Part shown: piece by piece, positions 1,197-53,141 of the stretch
Layout of the letters: the number at the start of each line of letters is the position of its first letter
Numbering within the stretch: the stretch's first letter is position 1
Assembly: GCF_006345805.1 (NCBI RefSeq)
Contig: NC_043001.1
Span: forward strand, 42,780,001-42,844,000
Source: Octopus sinensis
Lineage: Eukaryota
Direction: 5' to 3'
DNA: 64,000 nucleotides
Notes under the pieces: model-generated
The model's input: the letters and a program-made list of their open reading frames with translations, nothing else
Told to the model about the DNA's origin: nothing
Databases searched by the model: none
Position numbers and translations under genes: made by a program

Positions 1197-1263
1197 TATA
1201 TTAAAAAAAAATATCAACAAAACACTTGTTAATGATGCAGCTGTCACTGGAATAATCATTTAA

Positions 1264-4400: not shown

Positions 4401-4459
4401 TTCACAATATATGTATCTTTGCTTGTACGTTCCTGTTGGGTGATAACAACCTAAATTCC

Positions 4460-4599
4460 TTAACCTACAATAAGACCAACACCAAATCGGTATTGTGCTT
4501 TAGTGTGATTAGCATATCCACTCAAAGCAAAGGTAAATGGAAATGGCAGCAGTTTCTTCTCCAACATTGCCCCTACACACCAGTTAGTATCCAGTTGTC
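4460..4599 (-). CDS. TOMM40: TOMM40 last coding exon 7
   Basis: ttccag|(G)QLDTNWCVGAMLEKK...YRFGVGLIVG TAA. Confidence 0.96.
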
Positions 4600-7500
4600 C
4601 TGGAAAAGAAAAGGGTATAAAATATATTAATAAGTAATGATTTATTTTATCAATACATTTTCTGTAAATCTATGGCTATCATTGAAGATATAACCTAGAG
4701 AGAAGAGACCTAGAATTAGAAGTATTTTTGATGCCAATGAGAGTAGCAGCAAAAATGAAAATGCAGACGTGAGGAGGATGTGTGTTATAAAGTGAGACCT
4801 AGAATTAGTCTGTTGTTTGAGCTCTAAGATCATTTTGCAAAGTTACTCTAGCCATACATCAACATCAAAATGAAAATCAAATGGAAATTGTAGTTGTGAT
4901 ACCCGTGCTGGTGGCACGTAAAAAGTACCATCTGAATGTAGCCGATGCCAGCGCCACCATGACTGGCTTCTGTGCCGGTGGCATGTAAAAAGCACCAACA
5001 GATCATGGCCATTGCCACCCTCTTCTGGCCCCTGTGCCAGTGGTACGTAAAAAGCACCCACTACACTCACGAAGTGGTTAGCATTAGGAAGGGCATCCAG
5101 CTGTAGGAACACTGCTAGATCAAACTGGAGCCTGGTGCAGCCTCCTGGCTTCCCAGACCCCGGTGGAACTGTCTAACCCATGCTAGCATGGAAAACGGAC
5201 ATTAAACAATGATGATGATGATCATTATCCTACATGTGGAGTGGAATATGAGATAGATTTGGTTCCTCCCTCAGTCTGCAGCATGTCCTGATCTATTGCT
5301 AATTTAGGATACAGGTTTGGAGACATCCTGTGTATTTTTATAGAAACTGAAGAAAACCTTCTTAGAAATGGTTACACAAAGTGTTCTATTTTAAGTACAA
5401 CAGTGAGATATTACTAGCAACACAGATGCATCTTTGCTTATCTTATTATATTGTAATGAACCTAGCTCATTTATAAAACCAACACTAATTCAGCATTGTG
5501 TGTTAATATGATTAACATATCTATTCAAAACAAAGGTGAAAAAAAATTACAACAGAGATTTAAAAAAATAAAGTAAATGAGATTGATCAAGATGCAGCTA
5601 AAATTGTCAACGTTGGGAAACTGGATTTCAGGCTAGTCATGAAGTCATGAATGTAAAACAAGTATGGCATCAAGAGTAGAACGTAATAGAATTTTTGAGA
5701 TTTTGAAGAGCACAGAATGAATGACATTATTAGTGTTGATACATACATTAGAAATTAAAAAAACGAATAGTCAAATGAGTATTATCTATTTGATTAAAAT
5801 TTGAAATTACTTGAGAGCAGGCAAGCTGATAAAGTAGCCATTTACAAGAGATATTGGTTAATGTAGATGCAATAAATGTATTTACATCAGAATATGTAAA
5901 GTTGAAGACAAACAAAAATATGATGAATTGTTGGTAAATTAAGTCAGAAACAGGTCACAGAAGTTAGATTAAATCATAGTAAGGAATAGCTACAGAAAGG
6001 CTATTCTAAAACATTCTGTGTCTATTTTCCATGCCAGCATGGGCTGTACAGCATGTCTTGTACCTACAGTCCGTTTTTGGAATGGCTTTTATTTCTGGAT
6101 GCCCTTCCTAATGTATTGGTTGCATGTTCTTATGATACTAAACAGTCTCCTCTACGTTACATTGTCTCTATTCATTCACATGTATAGGATGCATTTTATT
6201 ATAGTAGGAGTATTAGAGAGGTTGCCATGTTCACACGACTAGATGGTGCTCTCTACATCATCTCCAATCTTTTATGGCAATTGTGACCAAGAGGCTGGAT
6301 AAAAGAGAGTGATGACCAAAAGGACAAAAGAGTGTGATGGAGAAAACCTTTTCTATTTCAAGCAGACATGAAATATTGCTAGATAACAACAAATTAGAAT
6401 AATCATACAACCTCTTTCTTTCTTTTTTGTAAACAAGTTAACCTTCTGACTAAAAATTTAAAATTCAAACTTACCCCTAAATGTCATTCCAGCATTCGGA
6501 ATTTCATATTGGTATCCTACTGTTGTAGCACTTTCTTGTAAACTTGATTCCATTTCAACAGCTATTTCAAGGTTTTCCATGACCTCCTGATGAAATCCTA
6601 AGTGAATACCTCCAGCAGCAGGACTACAGTTAGCAGAAAGCTGCCATTTATCTCCTGAAATAAAATAAGAAATAAATTAGATAGAATTTCAAGAGGAAAA
6701 TATGTATAGTCAGTTTAACCTCTTATATCTTCTATATTTTGCAACATCTTGTGTTCCAAAACAGTTATACTTATTAAATATAACTGGTTCTACTTATCTA
6801 GAGAGAGAGAATTAGTTCTTGTTTAAGCAGAATATATCTTCAAGCTCGAGACATATAGTTTAAGTTACATGGTGAATACAGCATCCTTGTGACAAAGGCA
6901 AATTATGCCAAAAAATAACGAAATTGACAGAATGGCAGCAATTTGTAGGAAAAATGGTATGGTTAATTGAATGAATCAATTCCAGTAAATGACTGATACC
7001 TATTTGATAGGATGAAAGACAAACTGTACCTAGAACAAATCCTTTCCCTATTTTTTAACAAATTAATATCACCTAAATTGAAGTTACCATTACTCTGTCA
7101 TCCAATTATTTTCTAGTTCCTCAATTTGGTTAATACTGAGTGGTCACCAAATCAAATATACTAGACACATTATTGCAGGAGAAACTAAATGCTGATAATG
7201 AGTAAATAGAATATATCTAACAAACAGTAATTGGATGGTAGAGAAATAGCATTTATGCACTAATATTAGAGTAAAAATTGTCTTCTCCAGCATCACAAAA
7301 CACAATTAGGCTATATTCTAACTACAAAGTAAATAATGAAAAAATAATACTGAAAATATTAACCCTTTAGCATTTAAACTGGCCATATCTAGCCAAAATA
7401 TTCTACTTGCTTTATACTGAAACTGGACAGACCTGGCCTCTCACACCCACCTCACAATGTTATTCTAAAAACAATCACATCATTGAAATCTCAAAGCTAT

Positions 7501-10500
7501 GAGATAGTAGATGATTAATTCAAAACATTGTGAATAAATAAGCATTACATTTGACAAAGGAATCTGAATGCTAAAGGGTTAAAGTTTACTATTGCCGTTA
7601 CCTGAATATTTCCCAGCTAATGAAAGTATAGCCATTTCATTCCCAGGGACGGTATTACCATACTGATATAATACCTCAGCACCAAGCATTAATGAAGAGC
7701 TAACTTTCTGTAAGTACTGAGCAACTGCAATACCTGTAAAACAATTTTAAACAATTAGAAATGTATATACAAAGTGATAGGTAGAAAAAAAAGGACACAA
7801 AAGCTATAAAATACATTTCATTTATACATAGTCTAATATAATAGCTATTTTGCTACACCATATAAACTGCCAAGACTCTTTGCAAGTACTATATCTACAA
7901 TTTTCAAAATTTATTGTGTATAATATATTTATCATCACCATTTTGACATGGTAAAATAGATTTAACAGTTTTGCAAGATGGCTATCACAATTTGTTTCAA
8001 ACTTGGATTATATCATCTGTGATGCCCAACATTTCTGAATCAGATCTCATCATTTTATCTTGTGTTTTCTTTGGTCTTATTTTGCCACAGTCAAGTACAC
8101 AAAACCTTCACTCATCATCATTATCATCGTTTAACGTCCGCTTTCCATGCTAGCATGGGTTGGACGATTTTGACTGAGGGCTGGCGAACCAGATGGCTGC
8201 ACCAGGCTCCAATCTTGATTTGGCAGATTTTCTACAGCTTGATGCTCTTCCTAACGCCAACCACTCCGAGAGCGCAGTGGGTGCTTTTTATGTGCCACCA
8301 GCACGGGGGCCAGTAAGGCGGTACTGTCAACAACCTCGCTCGAATCTTTTTACACATGCCACCAGCACAGGTGTCAGTAAGGTGACGTTGGTAACGATCA
8401 CACTCAAATGGTGCCCTTTTACGTGCCACCGGCACTCATGAAATAGAATTCATAGTAAAGCAGCTATCAGTCAATGTTTTTAATGCATAATCATTTTCTC
8501 ATTTCATTTGCACTCTGCTGTGTAAGTTAAAGTAGCACATCAAATGGAGCATGCTCAACTTATATTTTTCTCTTTTATCTACAGGTCTTCCACAGTTGAT
8601 GCTTTGACTGATATTGACAAAGATATGATGAAGAGTAGAGCATAAAACGTTGGTGAATGTTTATACAGTAAATTCCTCCAGCCTTATTTTTTGTATCTGT
8701 TTATAGCTTTAACAATTTTTGCAACCATGCACTTCTAGGTTCAATTCCACTGTACAAGACCTTTGGTAAATGTCATCTACCAGTCTTAAGAAAAAAATTT
8801 GGAGAACAGAAACTATGCAGAGACCTACACGTGTATGTATATATATAGATATATATACACACACACACACGTGTAGGTTTGCACAAATATATATATATAT
8901 TTCTGTGTGAGTTAGAGGTTGGGAAACCAACTAAGGGATAGTACCTATCCAATTATTCACAGACAAGTGTTAATTATTGCATGGCTATCTCGCAATTGAG
9001 TATTATATCCGAGTGGGGGTAAAAGATTTATATGGCAAGTAAGAAAACAGAGAGGGTATTAAGTCGACAGACATCAGCCAGTAAGCATTCAAGTGTGTCC
9101 ATTTATTCAATTGTAACAATTGAATAAATAGACAGACTTGAATGTTTACTTGCTGACGTCTGTCGACCTTATATCCTCTCTGTTTTCTTATTTGCCATAT
9201 ATATATGTCAGTGTGTACATATCTTTTTCCTATGTATATCAGCAAATGATATATATACTGCTGAGAAAACTAATAGACTAGACCAATGAGAAAAAAAAAA
9301 AAAATAATGTAGTAATTAATTGAGTTACATAGATACGCCTTTATCACTTTTACAACTGGAAACAGTGAAATAGCGACTGATCTGCTGGAACAATTACTAG
9401 TTCACTGCATTTCCACAAATAACACAATGTAAGATAAATGAAAATTTGTCTAATCTGTGGGTACAGAAATGGAATTATAACAAAAGATATCTCAATTCCA
9501 ATTTGAAACTTGTCATGATATATTCAAATGAAAAAGTGAAAATGTTTATCAAGTACAAATCTGCTCACTTGGCCTGACAAAAATACAAACTCTGATGAAA
9601 CAAAGCACAAAAAATTGGTAGCTGATAACTCAAATGTGTCCTAAAGGGTAGCAACAATTAGCATTAGTATCACTAGATACCACTACTTTCCATGCTACGA
9701 CTAACTGATTTTGAATGTATTGTAGTTTTTAGCTATTAGTTTCTTTTCCTTTGGATAATTTGTAAGACAATTGTATCTAAAAAGCTTTTGCTGATTAGAC
9801 AAGAGTTGGTTTTTATATATTAAAGTTCCAAATGAAATATTTTGAAAAATTAAATTATTGCTCATAAATCTATAAAAATGAAAAATAAATACATTACATT
9901 ACCAGATATTAAATACTTACCAGATTCATTAACAATATCTATATTTCCAAGAGTACAAGAACCAGTGAAATTATTGCCTTTATAATCCACAGCGCATTGT
10001 GTGGCCAGCCACTTGCTGTTCTGGATCTAAATAAAGAAAGTAACATCATTTCATTTTCTTTATTTCAGCACAACAAAACCCTCAAAAGCAAACCTCTATT
10101 ACTCTTCATTAAAACAATAAATAAATAGAGAACTGACACTTACTTGGGCAACAAATTTTCCTCGAAGTCTTTCAGTAAATTGATGTATAATGTTTGCGTT
10201 CATATTACCAGAAGCATCAGTATCACCAATAAGAACAGGGTAAGCCTATAAAAGGAAACAAGAACACTGAATCAAAAAGGCTGAAAATAAGTTTTAAATG
10301 ATACAATGCTTCCTTTAAAAAAATTACTATTGCCTTATGCATCTCACCCCCCCCCAAAAAAAAAACAACATTTTATATATATATAGAAAACAAATGTATG
10401 ACAGGACATTTAGCTATAAAATCATAGCAACACAAACCTTAGCACAGATTATTTGTATGTTCAAACATAATCAAAAGGAATATAAACGTTTCATGCCAAT

Positions 10501-13500
10501 AAATTTATATTCATAACATCTGGTGTTAAATGTAGATGTATTCATATAAAAACAACCAATGTAAGACAAAAAGGACGAATTTGTAAAAGTCTTCTGCTAT
10601 GAAATTTAACATGGAAATGCAGCCATTGATGGTCAATGAACAAAAAGCATTGTGTTATAGTCTCCATATTTGGCTGATTTAATGTTAAAAAGATAAATTG
10701 CCATTTAAAGCATCTTCAACAAAACTGAATCAAAATCTCCAGTCTGATGTGCAAAGTAATAATATTACATCAATGTAACTCCTTACACTGTATCTTTAGG
10801 ATACAATACATACAATGAAAAGAAAGCATCTTCATAGATGTAACCTCTTTACCTCTTGAGCACTGTACATTTTGGTACCAACATATGTTCCTCCAAACCG
10901 ATATCCAGTTGACTGGAATGTACTCATAGACAAAGTATGGCTGATTTGAAAATGACTGCTTAAACCTTTGGAAATAATCAGCTTCCCACCTTCGAACACT
11001 TGAGGAAATACATCTGAAGTATAAGAACACATTTATGTACTAATGAACAAGCATATATACTAATGCAAGAAAACAATAAAGGGTCATAAACTGTTAACTA
11101 ATGGCTGATCTTTCACAAATTAAAATGAGAAAGAAACTTTATAAACTTGATTACTTACAGTGATCAAATGGATAAAAAAAAAAGATCCCTCTCCTGACAA
11201 TACTACAAAATTCTTTCTTCACAAAAAGAATTTAGATTCTAATCCTAATACAATTACCTTTAAAATGCCCAAAAGGAAAACATTTTAATATGTCAATGCA
11301 ACTGAAGAATTAGTATCGAGAGGAAATATATATTAATTACACAAGTAATTTAGTCAAGACATCACCTGAAATAAATTACCCTTTCTAATTGACTGTAACA
11401 AATTATTATTATTAAGGAAACAGTGTACTAAAAACCATAAACTAAATACCTTGTGATATTTAGCTTGATCTCTCACATTTTTACTTCAAATTTCATCAAG
11501 TTTGATTTGTCTTTCATTCTCTAAGGTCCATAAAAATACATTCCAATAAATACTGATCCATGTGACATATATCCTTTTCCAAAAACTCATTATTATAAAC
11601 ACAACTCACATTACAGCATGTTTTAGGATTAAAAATTCTCCAGTAAACAAAAATAAGCCTGCTCCTACAGTACCGAAAAATACTACAATAATCATCTATT
11701 ATTTACTGAGAACAAATATAGTCAAGGGAAATGGTCGCCAACTTCATATTATGCTCATCTAATTTATTTCTGTAGCACCATCATAGATTAATTGCAACTA
11801 CATCACAAAAACAAAGCATTTATAGTACCTTGCAAAAATAACTTCTATGCACATAAAATTTCAAAAATATATAAATGTGCAGGAAGAGGTACTGTAGGTC
11901 CTGCCAAAAATTGTATTTAATAATTTGTACTTTATTTTCAAAAGTAATTCTTAAAATACAAAATATGTTAAAAAAAACATTTTATGATTGGTACTTTATT
12001 CAAGTGAGACATATCTGAAGCAAACATGCATATCTGGTTATAGCCTTGTAAGTGATAAATGAACATCACCTCTCCTTACAGCAACAAATTGGATGTGAGC
12101 TTTTAATAGTAAGTATTCCACTTAGATAAAGCTAAATTCAATGAGAACTGATTTCTTAACGAAAACAGTAACATACAAATTCACTTTCTCCCTGATCAGA
12201 GGAAACTTAACAAATTCAAAATTTTTTCATAAATTCTTTACCTTGTCGGACTTTCACTTGAGTTTTTTTTTTTATCGCTATAACTCAATGAGACTTCTAC
12301 GTGATGTAACATCAATATCATCTATTTATCACAAATGGATTCACCCACTAACCAAAACTGCTTATCCCTAGCAAGCTACTAAACATACATATATTAATTT
12401 CTATAATATCAATCTTAATTTTATTTCAATTTAGTGAGGCAAATTTCCAAAGACTGACATTTGAATATAGCTTATATTATCACTGAAACTAAACATTGTT
12501 TATAAATGACAATAAATGACCCCATAATATTTATCTCAAAGTTGCACCCATACTTTAATTGCCATCATATATGTAATTCTTGGTCGTATATCAATTTTAC
12601 CTTGTTAAATGGTGGCAGGATAAAAACATTAAAAAATCAGAGTTGGAAAGAAACAGAATTAAAACACACCAGTTTAATGGAGATTAGTGACTAACTTGGC
12701 AACATTCAGTTGCCTTTTGCTCAAGTGTTGCTAAATGATTTCCACAAATATTGTTAAATACTGTTGCTTCTTACAAAAAGTAGTACTGTCCTGACTAAAC
12801 TGGTCTACTCTTTTACTTGTTTCAGTCATTTGACTGTGGCCATGCTGGAGCACCGCCTTTTAGTCGAACAAATCGACTCCAGGACTTATTCTTTGTAAGC
12901 CTAGTACTTATTCTATCAGTCTCTTTTGCCGAACCGCTAAGTTACGGAGACGTAAACACACCAGCATCGGTTGTCAAGCGATGTGGGGGGGGGACAAACA
13001 GACACACACATATATATACATATATACGACGGGCTTCTTTCAGTTTCCGTCGACCAAATCCACTCACAAGGCTTTGGTCAACCCGAGGCTATAGTAGAAG
13101 ACACTTGCCCAAGGTGCCACGCAGTGGGACTGAACCCGGAACCATGTGGTTGGTAAGCAAGCTACTTACTACACAGCCACTCCTGTGCAATAAACTTCAT
13201 TTTATCTATGTCTGTCTAGTATTTTAATAGCTAGATAGTATATAGTAGTAAACCACAATGATATTCAATATTTATGCTACAATGAATGAAATATGAGGAT
13301 TATGACAAACGGATCTGGGAGTTACATTATGTGTAAGCCCTAAATAAAGGAGTTATTTATTTTGCGTTACCTCTAAAATTCTATTATAGACGATGATTCC
13401 TAATTGAGAATGTTTTAGGGTACTATTAAGACATTGTCCAAAGATTTTAACCCAGAACGGTTTTTCTTCCGTCTATATTTTCCACCTTCAATGTGCCAAC

Positions 13501-15119
13501 TAGACACCCATTGCAAACAACACCAGTTATTAACTTCCATTCTAGTTAAAAACAATCTTTCAAGCTTAACTAAAAACTGGTGCGAACTTATACACATATC
13601 TTGTTCAAGAGCAAACTGTATCTTTCTGTGTAGTCTAGAATATCAGGGCTCAATCTGTTACAAGACGAAAGACGATCTTGATCGATATCAATAAGGTGCT
13701 ACGAATCGCAGCTAAGTCTAATGACCACCAAGTCTACGTTTAGGATTAGTATTTGATTGACCCAGTCCACCCAAATGTTGAGACAGATCTCATTTCCGTA
13801 AGAACATATATATTGCATAACTAGGGAGTATTTCATTAACTTGATGTGCGAGCTCGAATTCACCGACGGAATTCTTGAAATAAAAAAGTTTCTCAGAGAA
13901 CAAATGAACTATGTATTCTAAAGTCAGCTATACTACACGGAAAGTGTTAAACTTTAATATATTTGGGAATGGAAGATAGTGTAATGTTTACCCAGTGTAC
14001 TTATATTTAAGATATCCCGAGACATGTAATGTATGTGCACCATACATAGCATTAATATACAAGTACTTATTCCATAAACGACGGTTTGACAATAAAATGT
14101 GTTCAGAAATAAATTATCCCACGTTTTATTTTTATAAATTGGAATTCATAAGAAATCATTCTTCGGCAATATATATTTTGTTGAGACTAATCTATACAAA
14201 TTGCTGTTAAAGAGAGCAACAGATGATAGATAATTACATTATGCGGAAGGCTATAATATTTTTAAATGTCAAATCATTTGTTCTCCCCCCAAACCTTTCG
14301 GTATTTTGAAAGACTACACATTTTAGTGCATTAATTATATAACAGAAAGTAAGCTAAAATAACAAAATATCGATTTTTCTTCTTGCACTAAAAAATACGA
14401 AACTTGGGATCATTGAAGGAGGTCGGGAAAATAAAGTGAGTAGTAGGGAGAGAAACAACAGAATATTGCAACTAAATAGTAATATACCATAAATAATACA
14501 TTTCTTTGAATTAACGATGGTAATATCACCGACTGAAACACAAAATTATCGATAGCTAACAAGGAGCATGTAACCTAAAAGTTGCTATTTTTACAATGAA
14601 CTGAGGAAGCCCTTTACATTTTACCTTACAGAAAAAGTTTATAGGTCAAAACACTAGATTTACATATAGTAATAAACGACAGTAATTATATAGGTGTTAG
14701 CATGAAAAACAAAAGGTTAATACTAAAATAATTCTAGTATTTAACACGAAGCCAATAATATTAATCAATTTACAGAATGTAAATGATAAACTGCAGGATG
14801 TTTTAGAGATTGAATAGCAAGTTAATATAAGAACAGGGTCGAATTACACCGGGTCATATCCAAGGTGAGACGGTCATAGGAATCAAACCTAAGAAAATCA
14901 ACGGGTTTCGTTTACAATTCTTTTACCTTTGCATTTTTTATGGAGATCTTCAAAAGTTCCAGGATTGTCAGGAAAATTTGTTGGGGGAATTTCTGATGGG
15001 GGACCTCCAGAAAGCCCAGAAGTTTGTGCCGGTTCTTTAGGTGGTGCAGGTGGCGGTGGTGTTAATAACGGTGGTACCGCCGCTGATGGAGGTTGTGATG
15101 CTGCATTTACATTACCCAT
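4460..15119 (-). CDS. TOMM40: Mitochondrial import receptor subunit TOM40, complete 7-exon gene (337 aa)
   Basis: Exons 15119-14927, 11013-10853, 10245-10144, 10026-9921, 7733-7602, 6654-6475 and 4599-4460, all GT-AG with matching phases, total 1014 nt. Hallmark Tom40 motifs: NPGTFEDLHKKCK, VFPQVFEGGKLIISKGLSSHFQISH, PVLIGDTDASGNMNANIIHQ, QLDTNWCVGAMLEKKLLPFPFTFALSG...YRFGVGLIVG*. Confidence 0.97.
4893..5222 (+). mobile_element. RTE LINE 3' end / RTE-tail SINE-like copy
   Basis: Matches the 3' UTR of the RTE copies at 36.5-36.8 kb and 59.2-59.5 kb; (GAT)n tail. Confidence 0.85.
6475..6654 (-). CDS. TOMM40: TOMM40 coding exon 6
   Basis: ttcag|(G)DKWQLSANCSPAAGGIHLGFHQ...TTVGYQYEIPNAGMTFR(G)|gtaagt. 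Confidence 0.95.
7363..7578. mobile_element. TTAA-flanked MITE (piggyBac-type)
   Basis: TTAA|CCCTTTAGCATT ... AATGCTAAAGGG|TTAA. Confidence 0.9.
7602..7733 (-). CDS. TOMM40: TOMM40 coding exon 5
   Basis: tacag|(G)IAVAQYLQKVSSSLMLGAEVLYQYG...LSLAGKYS(G)|gtaacg. Confidence 0.95.
8112..8436 (-). mobile_element. RTE LINE 3' end / RTE-tail SINE-like copy
   Basis: catcatcattatcatcgtttaacgtccgctttccatgctagcatggg... is the reverse complement of the RTE tail. Confidence 0.87.
9030..9200. repeat. Fold-back palindrome (MITE-like hairpin)
   Basis: Arms 9030-9113 and 9117-9200 match at 75/84 positions around a 3-nt loop. Confidence 0.9.
9921..10026 (-). CDS. TOMM40: TOMM40 coding exon 4
   Basis: tttag|IQNSKWLATQCAVDYKGNNFTGSCTLGNIDIVNES(G)|gtaagt. 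Confidence 0.95.
10144..10245 (-). CDS. TOMM40: TOMM40 coding exon 3
   Basis: tatag|AYPVLIGDTDASGNMNANIIHQFTERLRGKFVAQ|gtaagt, 102 nt. Confidence 0.96.
10853..11013 (-). CDS. TOMM40: TOMM40 coding exon 2
   Basis: ttcag|AT GTA TTT CCT; (D)VFPQVFEGG...GTKMYSAQE|gtaaag. Confidence 0.96.
12806..13188 (-). mobile_element. tRNA-derived SINE, near full length
   Basis: Minus-strand head with A-box (TGGCTGTGTAG) and B-box-like GGTTCAGTCCC, CORE-like ccttgggcaagtgtc, central (TA)/(TG) microsatellite. Further copies at 24.4, 28.8, 42.1 and 46.8 kb. Confidence 0.85.
14927..15119 (-). CDS. TOMM40: TOMM40 coding exon 1
   Basis: ATG at 15119; Pro-rich N-terminus MGNVNAASQPP...NPGTFEDLHKKCK, phase-1 donor G|GTAAAA. 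Confidence 0.96.
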
Positions 15120-15194
15120 AGTGTCCTAAATATGTTGAAAACTGCTATTAAAATTTATATACAGTTATATTATAGAACAGCCCCTAAATCTTCT

Positions 15195-15340
15195 CCAGCC
15201 CCGCTTCACGTGGAGCAGAGGATTGAAGCCATGTGTTCGTACATGCGCAGTAATTAACTTCCGCTCAAATATCGAAAAGTCCTATTAATCAGTAGGAGCT
15301 AACTCAGTTGCGCGTAACCGGCTTTGATTTAACGGAAGAC
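15195..15340 (-). promoter_or_regulatory. Putative TOMM40 core promoter (locally CpG-rich)
   Basis: 80-220 nt upstream of the ATG: E-box CACGTG (~15207), NRF1-like CATGCGCA (~15242), ETS-like ACTTCCG (~15258). Motif-level evidence only. Confidence 0.45.
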
Positions 15341-39921: not shown

Positions 39922-39965
<44 letters not shown>

Positions 39966-42900: not shown

Positions 42901-45900
42901 CCCTGCAAACTACCTCTTATTAATATGCAAATCACATACATCAATTTTTCTCTGAAACATATAACATCCAACTCCTATCTTTTCCTATCCAGGCAACATC
43001 AGTTCCAAATTTTTTCTGAAAAGGTGTAATTTGTTATTTAAAATCTACTGTTTCTATCACTTGCAGCTATTTTTGGTGAAAGTTTCATCCCCTGATTATC
43101 TTAAATTTACTGACTTTATTATTTTAAATGTCTTTTAGTGACCACCTACAGCTTCTGTGTTGCCAATTCCTTCAGTGTTTTATTTTGAATGCTTAACCTT
43201 TGTGGTTATTTCTTGAGAACTTTAACAAAAAAAAAATATTAATTATCTTAATATCAGATGAACACATTTAGAATTGACCATATTTAGCATGAGATTTTTC
43301 TGCCTTTGGGTTCCATCAATTTTTCATATCTAAATTTTCCCAGCAGAGAGTGTATTGACTAGAAGCTGTCCAAGTCACAATCTTTGAATGCTGGTATACT
43401 TGGCAAACTGGCAAAATCATCAACGTGACACACACAATACTTAGTAGCATTTTTTCCAGTTTTTTAGGTTCTGAGTTCAAATCCCACTAAAGTCAACTTT
43501 GCCTTTCATCTATTTGGGGTTGATGTAATTGATTTTCCCTCTTCCCTCAAAATTGCTGGCCTTGTGCCAAAATTACAAAGAATACTGTCACTTCTAATTA
43601 AACATATTTCTGTGCAAATGATGCCACAATTCCACCCTTCACTTCTCCATAATCTTGTCTATACAAACATCATCCAGAACTAATTTTGTTTGCAACACTT
43701 CTATGACCAATGAACTTCAAAGGTTGTTATTGTCAATGGAGGCATAATAGCATCTAAAATATATAAAAGAATTCACCAATTTTCAAAAATTGGAAGCCCA
43801 ACCATCTTTCCAACATACCATCTCTTTTCTCTCTTTCTTCTGTTATTGTGACAGTTCCTACTCTTCTGAGCTATCAAGTTGTGTATTTCTCTTGCCCACT
43901 CCTACTTAAATGCACCAACCTGTTCTTTTCTTGTCATTCTCACTGTGTCTTACACTAGAAACCTCATATTAAATGATTGGCTAATTCTTCCTACTCACAA
44001 TTATAATTTACAAGAAAGTGAGTATGAGAAAGTATGGACAGAAGATTAGGATGGGTGGGTGATAAGTTCATTAGGGTGTGAGAGTAGAGCAACGGATGTT
44101 TCTGCTAAATATTTATTGTCTAAAATATTGTTTGAAAATTATTATTTGTAAGAAATGTATGTATTTTGAAGTTTTTTCTTGTGATAATATTTGGAAACCA
44201 AGCTTTTGACTGGCTTGATATAAATTGATATATTCTGTTATATTTCTTTATTATAGGTGTTATCCTTTGAAATAAATTGCCCTAACTGCAATGCGATGTG
44301 TTCTACTAACATGAAATTAATCAGTATCCTTTTATTTTAATAAAATTTGATTAAATATTTCCTTTTCTACATTTGCTAGATAGCTAAAATTTATTAAGTA
44401 GGATATATTTTACTAAATAAATATCATGTTTTATTCTGGTGATGAGTTGCATTTTAGAATAAAGGCTAATGCATGAATTAATAATTTTTTCTAAACATTG
44501 CAAAATATTATAGAGAAAAGTGAAAAAATGAAAAGAAAAGAAAAGAAAAAATAAAGTAAAACAAATATGGCATTAATAGAAACAACAGCTAAAAAGCAAA
44601 ACATATTTTTCTGAGCCTTACAACTTTCTTTTGGAATGATAGTTATTAAAAGGATTGTTGATAAAAATGGTTTTGTAATCTGTCAATATAAATTATGCAC
44701 ACACATACATATATACATATACATATATACACACATATATAGAAACTCACATATTGATAGTGTTGAAGAAGCTATTACAACTTTTACAAATTAAAAATCT
44801 TTCTCTGAAATAAATAACTGCCATTTGTTAATGTCATCACCTTAACTGTACTAGATATTCCTCACTTTAAAGAGGTAGTTATAATGGCTACATCTTGTGA
44901 ACAATGTGGCCATCGTGATAATGAAGTTAAAAGTAGTGGTGCCATAGAACCAAAAGGGAAACATTTGGATTTGAGAATACGAACAATTACTGATCTGTCT
45001 CGAGATGTCTTGAAGGTATACATTTTCTTTGGTTTTTTAAGTACTTTTTTTAGTTTTCTTAGTGTAATTTTGAAAATTTATTCTCGTTCATTGATTGAAA
45101 TTAATTTTTATCAGTCTTTTAATTTTATTCTAACACTCTGAAAATGTTGGCTGTAACATTTTGTATGAAAATGAATTTAGAAATTTCCTCTTTAGATAAC
45201 TATTTTCTGACATCACTTTTAATATAGTTATCCTAGTTTATTGAAACATTTAATCATGTAAATGAGTTATGACATGTTTTCAAATATACAAAATTGTTTT
45301 ACATGATGATAATTCAAAATATGTTTGCCAATCATTGCATCATTAACTAATGATGAATTTCTTTGGTCTATTACAGAGTGAAACCAGCAGCATTTCTATT
45401 CCAGAGCTTGAACTTGAAGCTATGATGGGTTCCTTAGGAGGAAAGTTTACAACAGTTGAAGGTTTACTTAGTGATATAAATGACTCAGTAAGTCAAAGGA
45501 ATTTTGTTTTAATTTTACCAAATGTAGGCTGAAAAATGATTTACAATGAAAGAAATGAAAGTTTTTTTTTTTTAACCACTAAATCAAAAGTCAGCCAATT
45601 TAAGAATATTGATGTTGATTATAAATCTGTCCTTACGTAATAAATAATCACTGTACAAAAGTGTTTTGGTGCGTCTGATATCTGAGCAGGAGGTCAAGGG
45701 TTCAGATCTTCAGGCCCCTGGTCCATCCTGTCTTGCTCTATAATTCAGGAGCTACATGAACTCCTTTGGTGCCAGGATGCTTCATAAGATTTATGGGTTG
45801 CCATTGGTTGGATTTCCTATCCAACCAAAGGTTATACTTAGAAACTAGAATGCATCATGTTACTTGTATGATTCAGGAGCGTTGGCTCAGACTGTTTGGT

Positions 45901-46937
45901 CATGTTGCTCCATTTTCTGAGTTTGATCCTGTGTATCATGTTCTCTTGAGGATCTGGCCACGGTGATGGCTCATGTTGGTCAGTCACATGCCACATGGTT
46001 ATGACTGATAAAGGAGTATCTCATATAGATGGGGACTGACTGGGATACTGCTCAAAGAGTTGCTTGTGGCAATTTGAGCAAATACCGATAAATGGTAGAT
46101 GCAGTGATGTACTGCAATGGTTCATGCCCCCAAACCTGACTTGATCTGACCTAATTTGAATTTTGAAAGATTTTTATTTAAAAAATATAGAAATTATGTA
46201 TAGACTGTATTTCATTTGTCTGTTATTTTTTTTTATGACTACTTGTTGAAACTAATTATTAGTGTGATGTTTTAAAACTTAAACCTTTCTTACAGTGGAT
46301 TATACTAGATGGACATAAGCATAATTTTCTTTAGAAAATATTAGAATATTTAAGGAAAGAAAGAAAACAAAACTAATTTAATTCTTATCTGAATTTTTTT
46401 GTGTGGATTTTCTTGTAATCAAAAATATCATTAACCAAGCAATTTTTATGAGAAGAATTTTCCAAAACTTCATTACTTTTCACAAAGCTAACATGGGTTA
46501 GACAGAATTCATTGACACAGATTTTCTGTGATAAGGCCATCAGGTAAGGCTAAGATGCCTTACCTATTGCAAAATTTCATATTTCCAAGCAAGGTAATAT
46601 ATATTTTCTCATGATGAGATGTGGTTTCACAGAAGATTGGAAAAAAATGACATTGCTTGTATAATGGTGATGCTCATTTACAACTATTGTGTAATACCAA
46701 AACTGGGACACAAATGATGATGATGGTATATGTGTGTGTGAGTATGTATATATATTTACACACACACACACAGACACACACACACATACTTATAAAGGCA
46801 GAGGTATGGCTATGAGGTAAGAAGCTTGCTTCTCAACCACATGGTTCCAGGTTCAGTCTCTCTCTGTAGCACCTTGGGTAACTGTCCTCTATTTTCCTTG
46901 TGAGTGGATTTGGTAGATGGAAACTGAAAGAAGCCTG

Positions 46938-46993
<56 letters not shown>

Positions 46994-49900
46994 TCATCGT
47001 CGTTTAACGTCTGTTCTCCATGCTAGCATGGGTTGGACGGTTCGACCGGGGTTCTGGGAAGCCAGAAGGCTGCACCAGGCTCCAGTCTAATCTGGCAATG
47101 TTTCTACAGCTGGATGCCCTTCCTAACGCCAACCACTCCATGAGTGTAGTGGGTGCTTTTTACGTGCCACCTGCATAGGTGCCAGGCGGGGCTGGCAACG
47201 GCCACGGTCAGATTGGTGTATTTTATGTGCCACCGGCACGGAAGCCAGTCGAGGCGGTGCTAGCATCAGCCACGAGTCGGATAGTGCTTTTTACGTACCA
47301 CCAGACCAGGGATCCTGGCTGGTTCAATTCGATTTCGATTTCGCTTGCCCCAACATGTCTTCACAAGCAAAGGGGGTTGGCATGGGTGCCTGTCGTACGG
47401 TCGCATTGGAGTATTTTACGTGCCACGGCCACGAGTCGGATAGTGCTTTTTACGTACCACCAGACCAGGGATCCTGGCTGGTTCAATTCGATTTCGATTT
47501 CGCTTGCCCCATGTCTTCACAAGCAAAGGGGGTTGGCATGGGTGCCTGTCGTACGGTCGCATTGGAGTATTTTACGTGCCACGGCCACGAGTCGGATAGT
47601 GCTTTTTACGTACCACCAGGCCAGGGATCCTGGCTGGTTCAATTCGGTTTCGATTTCGATTTCGCTTGCCCCAACATGTCTTCGCAAACATGGGGGGTTG
47701 GCATGGGTGTCTGTCGTCGGATGAGGTTCTATATCGACTTCGCTTGCCTCAACCGGTCTTTGTGTCCAAGGGAGGAAAGGCATTCATAAGTGGGCTGGGC
47801 TCACTTGTCCTACCTGGTCTTCTCACGTACAGAATATTTCCAAAGGTCTCGGTCTCTGGTCATTTCCTCAGTGAGGCCTAAAGTTCGAAGGTCGTGCTTC
47901 ACCACCTCGTCCCAGGTTTTCCTGGGTCTACCTCTTCCACGGGTTCCCTCAACTGCTAGGAATTGGCACTTTCTCACACACCTTCATCCATTCTCGCCAC
48001 ATGACCATACCAGCGCAATCGTCTCTCTTGCACACCACAACTGATGCTTGTTAGGTACAATATTTCTCTCAAGGTGCTAACGCTCTGTCGAGTATGTACA
48101 CTGACATTACACATCCATCGGAGCATACTGGCTTCATTCCTCACGAGCTTACGCATGTCCTCAGCAGTCACGGCCCATGTTTCGCTGCCATGTAGCATGG
48201 CTGTTCGTACACACGCATCATACAGTCTGCCTTTTACTCTGAGCGAGAGGCCTTTAGTCACCAGCAGAGGTAAGAGCTCCCTAAACTTTGCCCAGGCTAT
48301 TCTTATTCTAGCAGTTACACTTTCAGCGCACCCACCCCCACTACTGACTTGGTCACCTAGATAACGGAAGCTATATATATATATATAAATATGTTTATAT
48401 GTGTGTGTGTGTGTCTGTTTCCTCCACTACCACTTGGCAACCAGTGTTAGTGTTTATATCTCCATAACTTAGTGGTTTGGCAAAAGTGACCAATAGAATA
48501 AATGCCAAGCTTTAAAGAAATATAAGTACTTGGGTTGATTCATTTGTTCAACTAAAAATTCTTCAAGGCTATGCCTCAGTATAGCCACAATCTAATGACT
48601 GAATAAGATAAAAGAGAAAATATGTATATATATACACACACCTTATGCCTTCAGATTCACCACTCTATTGATGTTGTTGATAATTTGCATAATGGAAATA
48701 TATATATATATATATTGATGTTGTTGATAATTTGCATAATGGAAATATATATATATATATGCAATTATTAAGCAATTAACACCATTCTTTGTATTTATTG
48801 CTAAACACCGGAGTTGGTGATTTGATGGAATTATATAATTTTCAACAAACAATTATGTAATCCTGGCAATTAATTTGACAAAATACATCTATGCTTCATA
48901 AAACAAAGCAAATATGTTTTCTGTATTTTATTAATACGCACACTCACACACATTTGTAATTGTATGCAGTTATCCACTTAAACATAAATTCATGAATATT
49001 TCTCTTTTACTCTGAAGCTGTCAAAGAACAATCCCTTTTGCTTTGGCGACTCTGCTGAGGAAGAAACAAAAGCAAAAATGAATGAATTCAGTAATAACAT
49101 TTCCCAAGTAAGTTTTAATTTTTACTAATTGACCTATATTTTTGTGAACGTTCTATTAATGAAAAGTTTCTGTTCAGTAAGACATATTAAAAAACTTAGG
49201 CCTGTTAAATTGTAAGAAATGTCTCCATCTCTAGACAACTGGTAACTGAAGTAAACCTCTTTCTAGCTTTAAAGTAAGATAGAAGCAGTTTATAATGGTG
49301 AAAATTTTATGACTGTTTTACTATTTGCTTTAAGTAAATGAAAATTGAAAGCTATTATCTGTTATCCTTTGCTATCAAATTAATGCTTATAATACTTTTA
49401 TTCCCTTATTAGTTTTAGTCATGAAACTGGGGCATTGCCTTTTATTGTCAATTACACTCTTTGAGAGTGTGTACTGTGTATTGTGGGTTCATGAATAGGA
49501 GCATGTAGTGTTGTGAGATTGTTTTCTTGCTATGCACAGTCACTGTGTTTTGGTGCTGTTAAAGAGATTAAGTTGCCATATATCTTTTAGAGTGCATATC
49601 TGACATATAAGTTATTAATTGAATGAATAGGTCCCAACCACAGATTTATTGTTTAAGATATGATTTTTCGAAGTGAACCATACTGTTTGCTCTAACATTC
49701 AGTGGTTTATTATATAGAGTACAGTGTGGCATTTTGGGTGTGTAGTTTTTTGTTTTTTTTATCTAATCTGCTTTTAAGTTCTAGTGATAGAAGCTTGGTT
49801 TAGATAGTCCTGGTCAGTTCACAACATCAGTTGTTTGCATCATTGTACAAAGTTTAATGTTATTAGTTTACAGGCTCAAAGAAATTGCCTTTCTTGTAGA

Positions 49901-52900
49901 AGATAGGAGCTAGATCAAGTGTGCACTGTTTTTTTTATGGGAATGGATTGAATGCTATCTGGACTACTTAGATTGGAGTGACTAGAAAAGAGTTTGTACT
50001 TGGCAGCTTTGTGCACTTAGAGGTGAAGTACATGGGACAGGGGAAGTGGCTGGAAAAAAGAGTTGAGGTGGAATTTTATTGTGTCTACAGTGTTGAAATG
50101 GAAGCAAAACATAATCAGCATAGGTGATTGCCTTTATTTACAGTTGTGTGTTACTTTTTGAGTCATTTTAGTTAAGAAGTCTTGAGGAAAGGGATAGAAC
50201 ACTTTTTCTAGCTTAATACAGATCCTGTTGCCAGTTACTTAAAATATTTGGGTTTAATTTGGAAAGAGTGTGAGAGAGAGAGAGCTTTTAGGCCTTTATT
50301 TCCTGATAATCATCTTGCAGACATTACACAGGTGTATGAGTACCTCCCAATTGGTGAAGATGGGTGATTTTCTCTAGGTGTTATTAGTGATGTTTATTGC
50401 CTGTGCAGCCGTTGCACAGTTTTGTGAGCAATTTAAGGTTTCTTTATTAGAGTAAAATGAAATTTTGATGGTTTCATTTTGGGTATTGTATTTTCTTGAA
50501 CCATAAAATAATTAAAAAATACTTTTTATTGACTTTTCATCCAATTTTTTGTTAGTAAGCAAAAATATAAAAAACAGTTTGAAAAAAATTTAACATCTGG
50601 TTACAGTCTAGAGAAAGAAACTCTAGTTTTATATTGTATCATACTGAAGTAAAAGTAATTTATTTGTGACAAAAAAAAAATTTTAATAATTCATATGTAA
50701 AATATTTCCTTTGATTTGTTCAATGATATTTGATGCATATTATCAAGTCATTAAGAATGAAATGTCCAATTTTGAAGTTCAAAATTTTACTTTATCTCAA
50801 TAAAAAGCAATGTAATTAATCAAAGTATGCACCTAAATTATCAACACAATTTTACCATTTTATCGGTAGCCTATTTGTGCCAGCAGTGAAGAATTCTGGG
50901 GAGAAAGAAGTGATGAAATCATGAAAGGCTGTTCTTGCATCTTTAGATTTGAATTTTTTTTCTTGCAAAAAGTTGTCTAATGCCTGGAAAACATGATAGT
51001 CAGTTGGTGCAAGGTCTGGTGAATATGGTGGATGACAGAGTACTTCCAAGTTCAATTCTTGTAACTTGAATAGCATTCTTTGTGCAACATGTGATTGAGC
51101 ATTGTCTTGCAAGAGAATTGGCCTGTATGTATTGACCAATCTCAGTTGTTTAATTGCATGTTCACTCATCATTTCATCCAATTGGTTGATGTATACATCC
51201 ACTGTAATTGACTTACCAGTTATCATGAAGCTGTAGTGGATGACACCAGTGCTGAACCACCAAACATACAGTATTTGCTTTTTTGATGAATATTCTTTTT
51301 TACATTGTGTTTTGGCACTCCATTTCTATCAAACCACTGTGCAGAATGCTTGCTAAGAATAATTTTTTCATCATACGTAACAATACAATGCAAAAATGGT
51401 TTGCTTTTATGCCATGACAGCAAAGAATAGCAAGTTTCAAGACAATATGTCATTTGATGCTTGTTTAGTTTGTGTGGTACCCACTTGTTCAGCTTCTTTA
51501 CCATGCCGATTTGTTTTAGATGATCCAATACAGTTGGAATCAAAACATCAAACCTTACTGCTAACTCACTACAGTTTCTAGCTCACCATTATCCATCTTG
51601 GTCTCAGGTCAACCATGGGACTGATTTTCAAGCGTAAAGTCACCAGACCAGAACTTCTCAAACCTTTGACATGCAGTGCACTCATTCGCCACATCTTCAC
51701 CAAACACCTCATTGATGTTTCAAGCTGTCTGGAATGCATTGGTTCCATGATGGAACTCAAATTCATAAACAACATGAATTTTTGATCTATCCCCAGGCTC
51801 ACAAAAATTGACTTACAAGAGAAAATTCACAATACAATCAGACACAATGAATTGCCTTTTGTAAAGTGATGTAACTCTTCAATGTTTAAAACAAAGAATT
51901 GTCAGGATTAAACATTAGAGTTAACGACTGTCAAACTTGATGCTTAAGAAAATTGGACATTTCATTTTAAATGATCTGATAGTTGGAAACTTATAAATTT
52001 TGCTTGTTTTACAGATTATATCAGGAGAAAAGCTTAATGTCCATTTGATCCTTGATGATCCTGCAGGCAATAGTTATATCCAGGTAAGCTAAAATAATTG
52101 TTAAATGTTACAGAATGATATAAGAACTTACATATTCTGAATGATATATATAACTACATTAAACGAAGAATGGGGACTGTTGGGGTTTGAAATAGACCTG
52201 ACTCAAGTTTGGCTCACAGGAAATGTAAAAACAGAATAAGTTTGTAAAACTATTTATTTGAAGTTGAAAGCTGTAGAGTTAATTTTTCTTTTGTATTTAG
52301 TGCATCTAGAAATCTAAGATTTGAAGAAAAATTTTTCATTAATATATTTGGCAGCTGACAGAATTGTTAGCATGTTGAACGAAATATTTATATGGCATTT
52401 CTTCTGGCTCTTTCAACTTCAGGCCTCACTGCTGATTGGCATGAAATCACTCACCAACATAATCCAACCTCTAATACTTATATGTGCTGTCTTCTCATTC
52501 TTTCTTTTTACCACTACTCCATCAGTCTCTAGTCTTCAGAGCTGCTTAGTGATCTTGTGTCACTTTCCTTTCTCTCTCTAAATGTACCACTGGTACAAAA
52601 TTATTTACAATTGCTGAACTAATGACTTATGGAAAGTTTTTTGTCTTTTCTTACATCCATTTTTCAATGTAAGCATGATTTAGATGAATGTATTATTGAG
52701 GCACATAGTTTTACAGCCAGATGCCCTTCATGTTGCTAATCCTTACAAGTTTCTCAAGTAAGGATGTCTTATTTCACACGTCTTTGTGGGCACAAAGCCA
52801 ACAAATAATTTATCAACAAGGAAAATGGCAACAACGTCACTTCTTGTAGCTCACAGTATTTAATATTCAGAGAGAATATGTAAACACACACATGCACACT

Positions 52901-53141
52901 TAACTATACTGTCATTCTCTGTATTGATATTTATCCTTTTACATAGATCAGCAATATCCTTAAATAGTTTCTTTTTCATCATTTGTGCCTTAACCTTAAA
53001 TTGGCTATTATTTTTTTTTCTTCCTTACAGGATTTATGTTTTCCTGAAGAAGACCCTGACCTTAAAATCACATATTATGAAAGGAATTTTGAAGAGAATG
53101 AAGCTTTAGGCTTAAATGATATGAAAACTGACAATTATTAA
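29675..53141 (+). CDS. ZPR1: Zinc finger protein ZPR1, complete 14-coding-exon gene (441 aa)
   Basis: Exons 29675-29788, 30993-31154, 34603-34687, 37755-37825, 38937-39023, 39397-39437, 41721-41802, 42704-42778, 44257-44323, 44855-45015, 45377-45487, 49018-49107, 52015-52083 and 53031-53141 total 1326 nt with consistent phases. Two C4 fingers (CVNC..CDHC; CPNC..CEQC), each followed by the ZPR1 A/B domain ([42 protein letters not shown]), ending [10 protein letters not shown]. Confidence 0.97.
30450..30790 (+). mobile_element. Old RTE LINE fragment
   Basis: Decayed ...NFVCSRC...[11 protein letters not shown], equivalent to FVCGRC...[11 protein letters not shown] in the younger copies. Confidence 0.65.
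30993..31154 (+). CDS. ZPR1: ZPR1 coding exon 2
   Basis: ccag|[32 protein letters not shown]...IISKK|gtaaga. Confidence 0.96.
31918..32993 (+). mobile_element. Internally deleted piggyBac (PGBD4-like) element
   Basis: TTAA|CCCTTTCGTTAC ... GTAACGAAAGGG|TTAA; N-terminal transposase remnant [44 protein letters not shown]. Confidence 0.9.
33172..33391. mobile_element. TTAA-flanked MITE, same family as 7363-7578 in opposite orientation
   Basis: TTAA|CCCTTTAGCATT ... AATGCTAAAGGG|TTAA. Confidence 0.88.
33905..34222 (+). mobile_element. RTE LINE 3' end copy
   Basis: gttggcattaggaagggcatccagctgta... and (GAT)n tail. Confidence 0.75.
34603..34687 (+). CDS. ZPR1: ZPR1 coding exon 3
   Basis: tacag|[29 protein letters not shown]|gtgagt. 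Confidence 0.96.
35229..36794 (+). mobile_element. 5'-truncated RTE LINE in ZPR1 intron 3
   Basis: [23 protein letters not shown], Cys-rich insert, [22 protein letters not shown]; 3' UTR and tail. Confidence 0.93.
37755..37825 (+). CDS. ZPR1: ZPR1 coding exon 4
   Basis: tgcag|(S)[23 protein letters not shown]|gtaagt. Confidence 0.95.
38937..39023 (+). CDS. ZPR1: ZPR1 coding exon 5
   Basis: tctag|[29 protein letters not shown]|gtaagt. Confidence 0.95.
39397..39437 (+). CDS. ZPR1: ZPR1 coding exon 6 (41 nt, U12 AT donor)
   Basis: ttcag|[15 protein letters not shown]|atatccttt. Confidence 0.93.
39438..41720 (+). other. U12-type (minor spliceosome) AT-AC intron of ZPR1
   Basis: 5' ss ATATCCTTT, branch site TCCTTAAT at 41701-41708, 3' end AC at 41719-41720. 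Splicing joins ENP|HAP in frame. Confidence 0.93.
41721..41802 (+). CDS. ZPR1: ZPR1 coding exon 7 (AC acceptor)
   Basis: tccttaattt acttttccac|[28 protein letters not shown]|gtgagt. Confidence 0.92.
42075..42258 (-). mobile_element. tRNA-derived SINE, 5' part, decayed
   Basis: taccaaatccactcacaaagc...cccaaggtgccatgcagtggg. Confidence 0.75.
42704..42778 (+). CDS. ZPR1: ZPR1 coding exon 8
   Basis: tatag|[25 protein letters not shown]|gtatat; linker ending LKDE before VLSF. Confidence 0.88.
43400..43580 (+). mobile_element. Second SINE family, decayed
   Basis: gttctgagttcaaatcccac..gtcaactttgcctttcatc; a related fragment lies at ~38.75 kb. Confidence 0.55.
44257..44323 (+). CDS. ZPR1: ZPR1 coding exon 9 (U12 GT donor)
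   Basis: tatag|[23 protein letters not shown]|gtatcctttt. Confidence 0.94.
44324..44854 (+). other. U12-type GT-AG intron of ZPR1
   Basis: 5' ss GTATCCTTT, branch site CCTTAAC at 44840-44846, AG 8 nt later with no polypyrimidine tract. Confidence 0.9.
44855..45015 (+). CDS. ZPR1: ZPR1 coding exon 10
   Basis: ctag|(N)[28 protein letters not shown]...DLSRDVLK|gtatac. Confidence 0.96.
45377..45487 (+). CDS. ZPR1: ZPR1 coding exon 11
   Basis: tacag|[37 protein letters not shown]|gtaagt. Confidence 0.96.
45760..46150 (+). mobile_element. 3' end of a different RTE-clade LINE
   Basis: [12 protein letters not shown]...[11 protein letters not shown]...; ends in short CCTGA/CTTGA repeats. Confidence 0.65.
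46797..48620 (+). mobile_element. tRNA-SINE split by an RTE insertion (5' half 46797-46990, 3' half 48374-48620)
   Basis: Head and body are collinear with the reverse complement of 12806-13188; the break is in the central (TA)n. Confidence 0.8.
46991..48373 (-). mobile_element. 5'-truncated RTE LINE with tandemly amplified 3' UTR
   Basis: [19 protein letters not shown]...[13 protein letters not shown]; tail at 46991. Confidence 0.92.
49018..49107 (+). CDS. ZPR1: ZPR1 coding exon 12
   Basis: tgaag|[30 protein letters not shown]|gtaagt. Confidence 0.94.
50741..51981 (-). mobile_element. Full-length decayed mariner (DD34D) in ZPR1 intron 12
   Basis: TIR TATCA(A/G)(G/A)TCATT.A.AATGAAATGTCCAATTTT at both ends; WVPHKL, TYDEK, QDN-34[13 protein letters not shown]; several frameshifts. 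Confidence 0.92.
52015..52083 (+). CDS. ZPR1: ZPR1 coding exon 13
   Basis: tacag|[23 protein letters not shown]|gtaagc. Confidence 0.96.
53031..53141 (+). CDS. ZPR1: ZPR1 last coding exon 14
   Basis: tacag|[39 protein letters not shown]; AATAAA at 53445-53450. Confidence 0.96.
   Translation, partial: DLCFPEEDPDLKITYYERNFEENEALGLNDMKTDNY

Follow-up and report, generated by a model that had tools for sequence, protein, structure and literature searches.

Why should two unrelated housekeeping genes, TOMM40 and ZPR1, both border clusters of exchangeable apolipoprotein genes in vertebrates? The question is raised by a stretch of 64,000 nucleotides from Octopus sinensis (contig NC_043001.1, positions 42,780,001 to 42,844,000 of the forward strand; hereafter the window), in which the two genes lie head to head with no recognisable gene between them. 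An earlier note on this DNA had suggested that such a block was the pre-vertebrate scaffold of the apolipoprotein paralogon. The same divergent pair was recovered here from several other animal phyla, and it is probable, in our judgement, that the octopus pair is a copy of one inherited from the ancestor of cnidarians and bilaterians, that the exchangeable apolipoproteins arose at this locus before the two rounds of vertebrate genome duplication (2R), and that reciprocal loss of the partners followed. The genes and the spacer between them, numbered from the first letter of the window, are the following.

4460..15119, minus strand: TOMM40 (Tom40) coding region, with its ATG at 15119, its stop codon at 4462-4460 and seven coding exons
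15119-14927, 11013-10853, 10245-10144, 10026-9921, 7733-7596, 6651-6475 and 4599-4460, minus strand: TOMM40 exons, from splice-aware reconstruction
15120..29674, no strand: 5'-5' spacer without recognisable gene, 14,555 bp between the TOMM40 and ZPR1 ATGs
29675..53141, plus strand: ZPR1 coding region, with its ATG at 29675, a stop codon ending at 53141 and 14 coding exons
29675-29788, 30993-31154, 34603-34687, 37755-37825, 38937-39023, 39397-39437 and 41721-41802, plus strand: ZPR1 exons 1-7, from splice-aware reconstruction
42704-42778, 44257-44323, 44855-45015, 45377-45487, 49018-49107, 52015-52083 and 53031-53141, plus strand: ZPR1 exons 8-14, from the same reconstruction

The identity of both genes is secure. 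The earlier note had read TOMM40 on the minus strand (ATG 15119) and ZPR1 on the plus strand (ATG 29675) as divergent neighbours, and all four coordinates that delimit them (4460, 15119, 29675 and 53141) proved exact. Translated from its ATG, TOMM40 begins MGNVNAASQPP..., and its spliced product of 338 residues is 91% identical to the TOM40 of Argonauta hians. The closest relatives of this product are animal TOM40 proteins, matched over their full length, with 50-67% identity to named TOM40s in other phyla, and it matches the Porin_3 profile (PF01459) from end to end (Pfam, E 7.4e-65, positions 1-271 of 271). The model has no exact counterpart in the protein collection, and one junction may deviate from the reference annotation; in the top-scoring splice model, intron 5 has a GC instead of a GT donor (7595-7594, minus strand). 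Read from ATG 29675 on the plus strand, the first exon of ZPR1 gives ten residues, ..., then IESLCVNC. The complete translation of 441 residues equals XP_029636449.1 (ZPR1, Octopus sinensis) letter for letter, which validates the gene model, including an AT-AC intron; it contains two Zn_ribbon_ZPR1 domains (E 2.4e-51) and two jr-ZPR1 domains (E 2.2e-85, both Pfam). Human TOMM40 and ZPR1 protein sequences were the first probes; they served for exon location only, and the models were refined with database orthologues. All conclusions rest on database proteins and the window sequence, and none on these probes.

The arrangement is shared with four other lophotrochozoan animals.

Gigantopelta aegis (Mollusca, gastropod): TOM40 at 46,952,821-46,966,238, minus strand, and ZPR1 at 46,978,319-47,002,538, plus strand; divergent on the same chromosome, 12,080 bp apart, no called gene between
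Lingula anatina (Brachiopoda): TOM40 and ZPR1 divergent, no called gene between, spacer of 857 bp
Owenia fusiformis (Annelida): TOM40 and ZPR1 divergent, no called gene between, spacer of 2,582 bp
Lineus longissimus (Nemertea): TOM40 and ZPR1 divergent, no called gene between, spacer of 1,881 bp

At all four loci, tblastn searches with the proteins of the window, which make no use of the stored gene calls, confirmed both genes and their strands. The two genes of Argonauta also lie together, on one contig of 32.7 Mb.

An outgroup came from metagenome contigs scanned with a TOM40 alignment, of which one, 12.8 kb long (OMLO01003571.1, hereafter L050), bears TOM40 plus ZPR1. Here the minus strand carries ZPR1 and the plus strand TOM40, and their ATGs are 228 bp apart; the first exons of ZPR1 and TOM40 read MAEEPKEPLFKDIDADDEPETTAIESLCMSC and MGNVLAASPSNP..., and the downstream exons of both genes continue on the same contig. 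Its TOM40 is roughly equidistant from all bilaterian TOM40s compared (45-57% identity) and 95-96% identical to the TOM40 of two further contigs, L042 and L051. The protein reconstructed from L051 is exactly XP_020621622.1 of Orbicella faveolata, and the TOM40s of Pocillopora and Stylophora fall in the same 90% cluster as that entry. The L050 model has no exact match in the protein collection and is assigned to corals via L051: its TOM40 is 95.7% identical to that of Orbicella faveolata and 87-88% identical to those of Pocillopora and Stylophora, and L050 and L051 agree at 84-91% of nucleotides, starting at a position 90 bp 5' of the TOM40 ATG. Judged by its TOM40, which is so close to the Orbicella protein, L050 is coral host DNA, from a scleractinian related to Orbicella. 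The other TOM40-bearing metagenome contigs (from termite-gut, worm-symbiont and further samples) showed no ZPR1; they reach only a short way upstream and were not counted as absences.

All six lineages (octopus, Gigantopelta, Lingula, Owenia, Lineus and coral) thus have the pair in one orientation and without a gene in between, and an adjacency that recurs across phyla in the same orientation is not a product of chance. Since one cnidarian and four lophotrochozoan phyla share the arrangement, the pair is, on this comparative evidence, older than Bilateria, the cnidarian side of the comparison being a single contig; parsimony places it in the bilaterian and deuterostome ancestors as well. The suggestion of a very old microsynteny is therefore strongly supported, with the same gene-free divergent pair in Gigantopelta, Lingula, Owenia, Lineus and the coral, and these five non-octopod lineages rule out that the adjacency is confined to octopods.

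Several observations were made in the surroundings of these loci. In Owenia, a Capicua (Cic) gene lies 3' of TOM40 (23924-26119 of the extracted locus, L008, plus strand), and in Lineus an HSL/LIPE-like gene, recognised by its HSL_N domain, lies 3' of ZPR1 (L011, 1-89, plus strand). Human CIC and LIPE are both located at 19q13.2, a hint that human 19q13 may be the counterpart of a larger block surrounding the pair. Daphnia has a gene encoding an ApoL domain (PF05461) at a distance of 4 kb on the 5' side of TOM40 (L010, 4774-5981, plus strand); it was rejected as evidence, apolipoprotein L being unrelated to the exchangeable A/C/E family, and is treated as a coincidence. The last exon of TOM40 is present in duplicate in Capitella (L006, 5277-5414 and 12097-12234), as is exon 2 of ZPR1 in Aplysia (L003, 11254-11406 and 15019-15171); these are either local duplications or artefacts of older draft assemblies.

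What, then, lies between the two start codons in the octopus? The spacer was scanned against Pfam in six frames as all 120 of its stop-free segments of at least 45 residues, a design whose reach ends at exons shorter than 45 residues, lineage-specific genes and non-Rfam non-coding RNAs. The sole Pfam match among these segments was RVT_1, from a transposon:

~20664..21095, minus strand: fragment of a reverse transcriptase (RT) of a long interspersed element (LINE), matching RVT_1 at E 1.3e-10, with RT-like open frames over ~20061-21095

Copies related to this fragment lie at 35194-36226 and 57803-58550, and about 25% of the spacer is repeated elsewhere in the window or inside the spacer itself. 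No open frame resembling PF01442 or any other apolipoprotein was found among the 120 segments of 15120-29674 at E <=0.1. The same library detected a shark apolipoprotein at E 1.6e-69, which shows that the scan works, and absence of the family from the octopus gap is what the model of the earlier note expects. Neither an Rfam family nor a tRNA was found in 15120-29674, and no sequence conserved between the octopus and Gigantopelta spacers was detected by tblastx or blastn. A hidden gene in the octopus spacer was considered and rejected, there being no Pfam gene domain beyond RVT_1, no Rfam or tRNA hit and no cross-species signal. The earlier reading that no recognisable protein gene separates TOMM40 from ZPR1 holds, as only repeats and the LINE RT fragment were found there.

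The distance between the two ATGs varies widely, from 228 bp in the coral through 857 bp in Lingula, 1.9 kb in Lineus and 2.6 kb in Owenia to 12.1 kb in Gigantopelta and 14.6 kb in the octopus. Taking about 1 kb or less as the size of a single bidirectional promoter, the octopus spacer is above that size unless ZPR1 has a further exon upstream. Two features of the window bear on such an exon.

13600..16600, no strand: CpG-undepleted island, CpG observed/expected ratio (o/e) 0.6-1.15 against a window median of 0.22
29620..29674, plus strand: sequence resembling a 3' splice site (tatttatttgtag/G), 31 nt upstream of the ATG of ZPR1

The island covers exon 1 of TOMM40 and the beginning of the following intron and extends ~1.5 kb into the spacer, and putative motifs, read as ETS-like CGGAAGT, TGCGCATG and CACGTG, lie 100-160 bp 5' of the TOMM40 ATG. 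It is likely to be the TOMM40 promoter and possibly a retained promoter shared by TOMM40 and ZPR1. The ATG of ZPR1, on the other hand, lies within a CpG-poor stretch (25.2-31.8 kb, o/e ~0.1), whose low CpG resembles that of transcribed gene bodies. Gigantopelta likewise has a similar 3' splice site, 16 nt before its ZPR1 ATG, and a CpG island at the TOM40 end of the spacer (CM027801.1, 46,965,400-46,968,900). Taken together, these features suggest that ZPR1 has a non-coding first exon upstream, in the octopus possibly at the TOMM40 island. If so, much of the spacer would be an intron of the ZPR1 5' untranslated region, and the ancient promoter serving both directions might still be in place. 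Between 22 and 25.2 kb lies another CpG-rich patch; it coincides with repeats and may represent young transposons or an alternative start site.

The vertebrate side of the question can be approached through the elephant shark (Callorhinchus), in which ZPR1 is flanked by a same-strand gene of 363 residues on its 5' side and by BUD13 on its 3' side. The last exon of the 363-residue gene holds an open frame of 321 residues made of proline-punctuated 22-mers, which matches PF01442 (Apolipoprotein A1/A4/E) at E 1.6e-69, and the gene ends 1.8 kb 5' of ZPR1. In a chondrichthyan, an exchangeable apolipoprotein thus holds the place that TOM40 holds in invertebrates. On the TOM40 side, lal1 and tom40 of lamprey share a scaffold and have been described as 'evolutionarily linked' (PMC7431520), 7 kb separates the neighbouring mouse genes Tomm40l and Apoa2 (PMC2577893), and TOMM40 lies upstream of APOE and APOC1 in both human and mouse (PMC8822359). 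Moreover, PMC4536121, citing Zucchetti et al. 2009, regards human 1q23-24, 11q23 and 19q13 as paralogons from ancient tetraploidisation. Together with the shark gene, these reports leave the notion of a scaffold for the apolipoprotein paralogon well supported, if indirectly.

On the account that we favour, cnidarians and bilaterians inherited the divergent pair from their common ancestor. Where genomes are compact, the start codons are 0.2-2.6 kb apart, the layout of a bidirectional promoter shared by two housekeeping genes; in the octopus and Gigantopelta, insertions would have stretched the spacer to 12-15 kb, and transcription of ZPR1 may still begin near the CpG island of TOMM40 by way of a non-coding first exon. 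Exchangeable apolipoprotein genes (PF01442) would then have appeared at this locus on the vertebrate stem, most parsimoniously between the two 5' ends, and after two rounds of genome duplication each copy would have lost one partner: 19q13 would retain TOMM40 with the APOE/C genes, 1q23 would retain TOMM40L with APOA2, and 11q23 would retain ZPR1 with APOA5/A4/C3/A1. A single ancestral site followed by reciprocal loss would explain why apolipoprotein clusters adjoin both of these otherwise unrelated housekeeping genes. Persistence of the pair to the vertebrate stem, birth of the family at the locus and reciprocal loss are the steps that we infer. The full statement, in which the family, a vertebrate innovation, was born inside or beside a pre-bilaterian pair, the pair was split on the vertebrate stem and the three human clusters are remnants of 2R, is offered tentatively, its probability falling a little short of even.

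A number of points weigh against this account. The cnidarian evidence consists of one metagenome contig of 12.8 kb. Within 10 kb, neither Capitella, Priapulus, Daphnia nor the sea spider Nymphon showed the TOM40-ZPR1 adjacency; in Aplysia the two genes share a scaffold but are 106 kb apart on the same strand, a rearranged state, and in Patella caerulea their proteins are encoded on separate contigs. The adjacency in gastropods and annelids, which the earlier note had proposed to check, is accordingly present in Gigantopelta and Owenia but not in Aplysia or, within 10 kb, in Capitella. These absences are losses, and their recurrence in three ecdysozoans and Capitella means that the pair breaks easily and could have split before vertebrates. 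The invertebrate loci compared are those of protostomes and a coral; the homologue searches returned no amphioxus, hemichordate, echinoderm or tunicate protein, and the one with Lingula TOM40 returned protostomes only. In zebrafish, tomm40 is ~2 Mb from apoc1 and in the other orientation (PMC8822359). A published scenario, finally, derives the three clusters by tandem duplication and translocation, with apoa2 and apoa1/a4/c3 having moved, and not by genome duplication.

The precise birthplace of the family depends further on strands at human 1q23, 11q23 and 19q13. APOA5, APOA4 and APOA1 are on the strand of ZPR1 at 11q23, and APOA2 lies on the 5' side of TOMM40L, divergent from it, at 1q23; both arrangements fit an origin in the 5'-5' gap, as the earlier note had it. 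The arrangement at 19q13, where APOE lies 3' of TOMM40 on the same strand, does not fit, and tells against our account unless one inversion of TOMM40, or an origin beside the gap, is allowed. We rank an origin in the gap first, but not by much, because a shared promoter of 228-857 bp is an awkward birthplace for a new gene.

The same awkwardness lends some appeal to an ancient pair whose apolipoprotein cluster was born outside it, 3' of TOMM40, with the 11q23 cluster coming to lie beside the 5' end of ZPR1 through loss of the TOMM40 copy, and with the bidirectional promoter intact until after genome duplication. Gene birth in so short a spacer would break two housekeeping promoters of a pair that is tightly conserved in five phyla, and human TOMM40 and APOE stand in tandem, which is compatible with PMC8822359. 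Yet human APOA5/A4/A1 and the shark apolipoprotein gene share the strand of ZPR1, the opposite of what this origin predicts, and APOA2 is on the 5' side of TOMM40L. At least two changes would be needed, an inversion of the cluster at 11q23 and a relocation at 1q23, compared with one for an origin in the gap, and we consider birth 3' of TOMM40 unlikely.

Still less likely, to our mind, is that the invertebrate pair is real and its link with apolipoproteins coincidental or later, the pair having been broken before vertebrates and the clusters having formed by tandem duplication and translocation. The repeated loss of the pair in Capitella, Priapulus, Daphnia, Nymphon and Aplysia would suit such a history, as would the published movement of apoa2 and apoa1/a4/c3 to other chromosomes; the invertebrates compared are protostomes and a coral. 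If the pair were irrelevant, however, the chance that TOMM40's neighbour should also flank a paralogous apolipoprotein cluster, and that both partners should adjoin such clusters, is by a rough estimate ~1 in 1,000-10,000. Linkage of an apolipoprotein gene with tom40 is already present in lamprey (PMC7431520) and adjacency of one to ZPR1 in a chondrichthyan, and in PMC4536121 the regions are independently regarded as paralogons. The Cic neighbour in Owenia and the HSL neighbour in Lineus also match human 19q13.2.

It is very improbable that the adjacency arose independently in Lophotrochozoa and corals, or that the coral contig is mis-assembled and the pair a lophotrochozoan feature without bearing on vertebrates: there is just one cnidarian contig and all three ecdysozoans sampled lack the pair, but six lineages share the orientation without an intervening gene, the 228-bp spacer of L050 joins two first exons whose genes continue with later exons on the same contig, and L050 aligns to Orbicella L051 at 84-91% from a point 90 bp 5' of the TOM40 ATG.

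The remainder of the window is AT-rich (G+C ~35%) and dense in transposon debris, with RT, mariner/Tc1 and piggyBac-like open frames; the following features lie within or beside the two genes.

39438..41720, plus strand: AT-AC (U12-type) intron 6 of ZPR1, donor ATATCCTTT, with TCCTTAAT ~12 nt before the AC acceptor
63605-63832, minus strand: final coding exon of a gene resembling L-threonine 3-dehydrogenase, with 2dq4 as its best match in PDB (E 6e-13)
622-1085, 32405-32695, 35194-36226, 50855-51826 (minus strand), 56352-57363 and 57803-58550: transposon remnants in introns and flanks
4846-5172, 8178-8438, 19345-19695 and 33920-34150, both strands used: copies 1-4 of a short interspersed repeat
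36636-36869, 47127-47786, 53986-54258 and 59160-59486, both strands used: copies 5-8 of the same repeat

The AT-AC junction of ZPR1 intron 6 is required to yield the RefSeq protein exactly. A ATATCCTT donor stands at the matching ZPR1 codon position in Gigantopelta (L004, ~20671), Aplysia (L003, ~21104) and Owenia (L008, ~3544, minus strand), and there is no intron at this position in Lingula, Lineus, the coral or the elephant shark. It looks like an old minor-spliceosome intron kept in some spiralians. The threonine-dehydrogenase-like gene is the convergent 3' neighbour of ZPR1, ~10.5 kb off, and the rest of it lies beyond the end of the window. Among the transposon remnants are mariner-like fragments, a mariner transposase (Transposase_1/DDE_3), a Tc1-type transposase (HTH_Tnp_Tc3_2), a piece of a piggyBac-type transposase (DDE_Tnp_1_7) and a LINE RT with a PHD-like finger. 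The short interspersed repeat has at least eight copies, and its translation carries a motif in which 12 residues are followed by FYVPPA; the copy at 47.1-47.8 kb is tandemly reiterated and G+C-rich.

In the main texts of a collection of 8.3 million papers, we found no report of synteny or microsynteny of TOMM40/TOM40 with ZPR1, none that makes the pair the pre-duplication anchor of the apolipoprotein clusters and none that treats TOMM40L together with ohnologues. Nor do the searchable texts of the paralogon literature use TOMM40-ZPR1 as an anchor or place the origin of the apolipoproteins at a defined pre-duplication pair. As an anchor, the pair would tie three medically important clusters, TOMM40-APOE-APOC1, APOA2-TOMM40L and ZPR1-APOA5-A4-C3-A1, to one pre-vertebrate site, and it favours whole-genome duplication with reciprocal loss over the published translocation scenarios. 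If the account is true, the place to look for a proto-apolipoprotein is precisely defined, namely the TOMM40-ZPR1 interval of amphioxus, tunicates and cyclostomes, and a vague question about the origin of the exchangeable apolipoproteins becomes a testable one.

Catalogues of ancient metazoan microsyntenic and head-to-head housekeeping pairs were reportedly assembled by Irimia and co-workers in 2012 and by Simakov and co-workers in 2013. TOMM40-ZPR1 resembles such pairs in being adjacent, divergent and uninterrupted from a cnidarian to molluscs, with 228-857 bp between the genes in compact genomes; it differs in that the spacer reaches 12-15 kb in the octopus and Gigantopelta and that the two genes have come apart in vertebrates and the sampled ecdysozoans. 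With the human cluster NECTIN2-TOMM40-APOE-APOC1-APOC4-APOC2 (19q13.32) and with lamprey lal1-tom40, it shares a TOMM40 orthologue, which in vertebrates adjoins exchangeable apolipoproteins as far back as cyclostomes. The octopus, however, has no apolipoprotein there and has ZPR1 on the 5' side, whereas human APOE is 3' of TOMM40. In the cluster BUD13-ZPR1-APOA5-APOA4-APOC3-APOA1 (11q23.3), the 5' end of ZPR1 faces the neighbour just as it does in the octopus. Yet that neighbour is a same-strand PF01442 gene in shark and human, with BUD13 on the 3' side, whereas in the octopus it is TOMM40 on the opposite strand, and the 3' neighbour is the threonine-dehydrogenase-like gene. The paralogon of 1q23, 11q23 and 19q13 (with 3q13 and 21q22, and with the nectin, JAM, TAGLN and ITAM-subunit families; Zucchetti et al. 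2009) provides the frame for the TOMM40/TOMM40L and apolipoprotein duplicates. The vertebrate clusters and their paralogon are thus already well known, and the TOMM40-ZPR1 pair is a new example within a known class.

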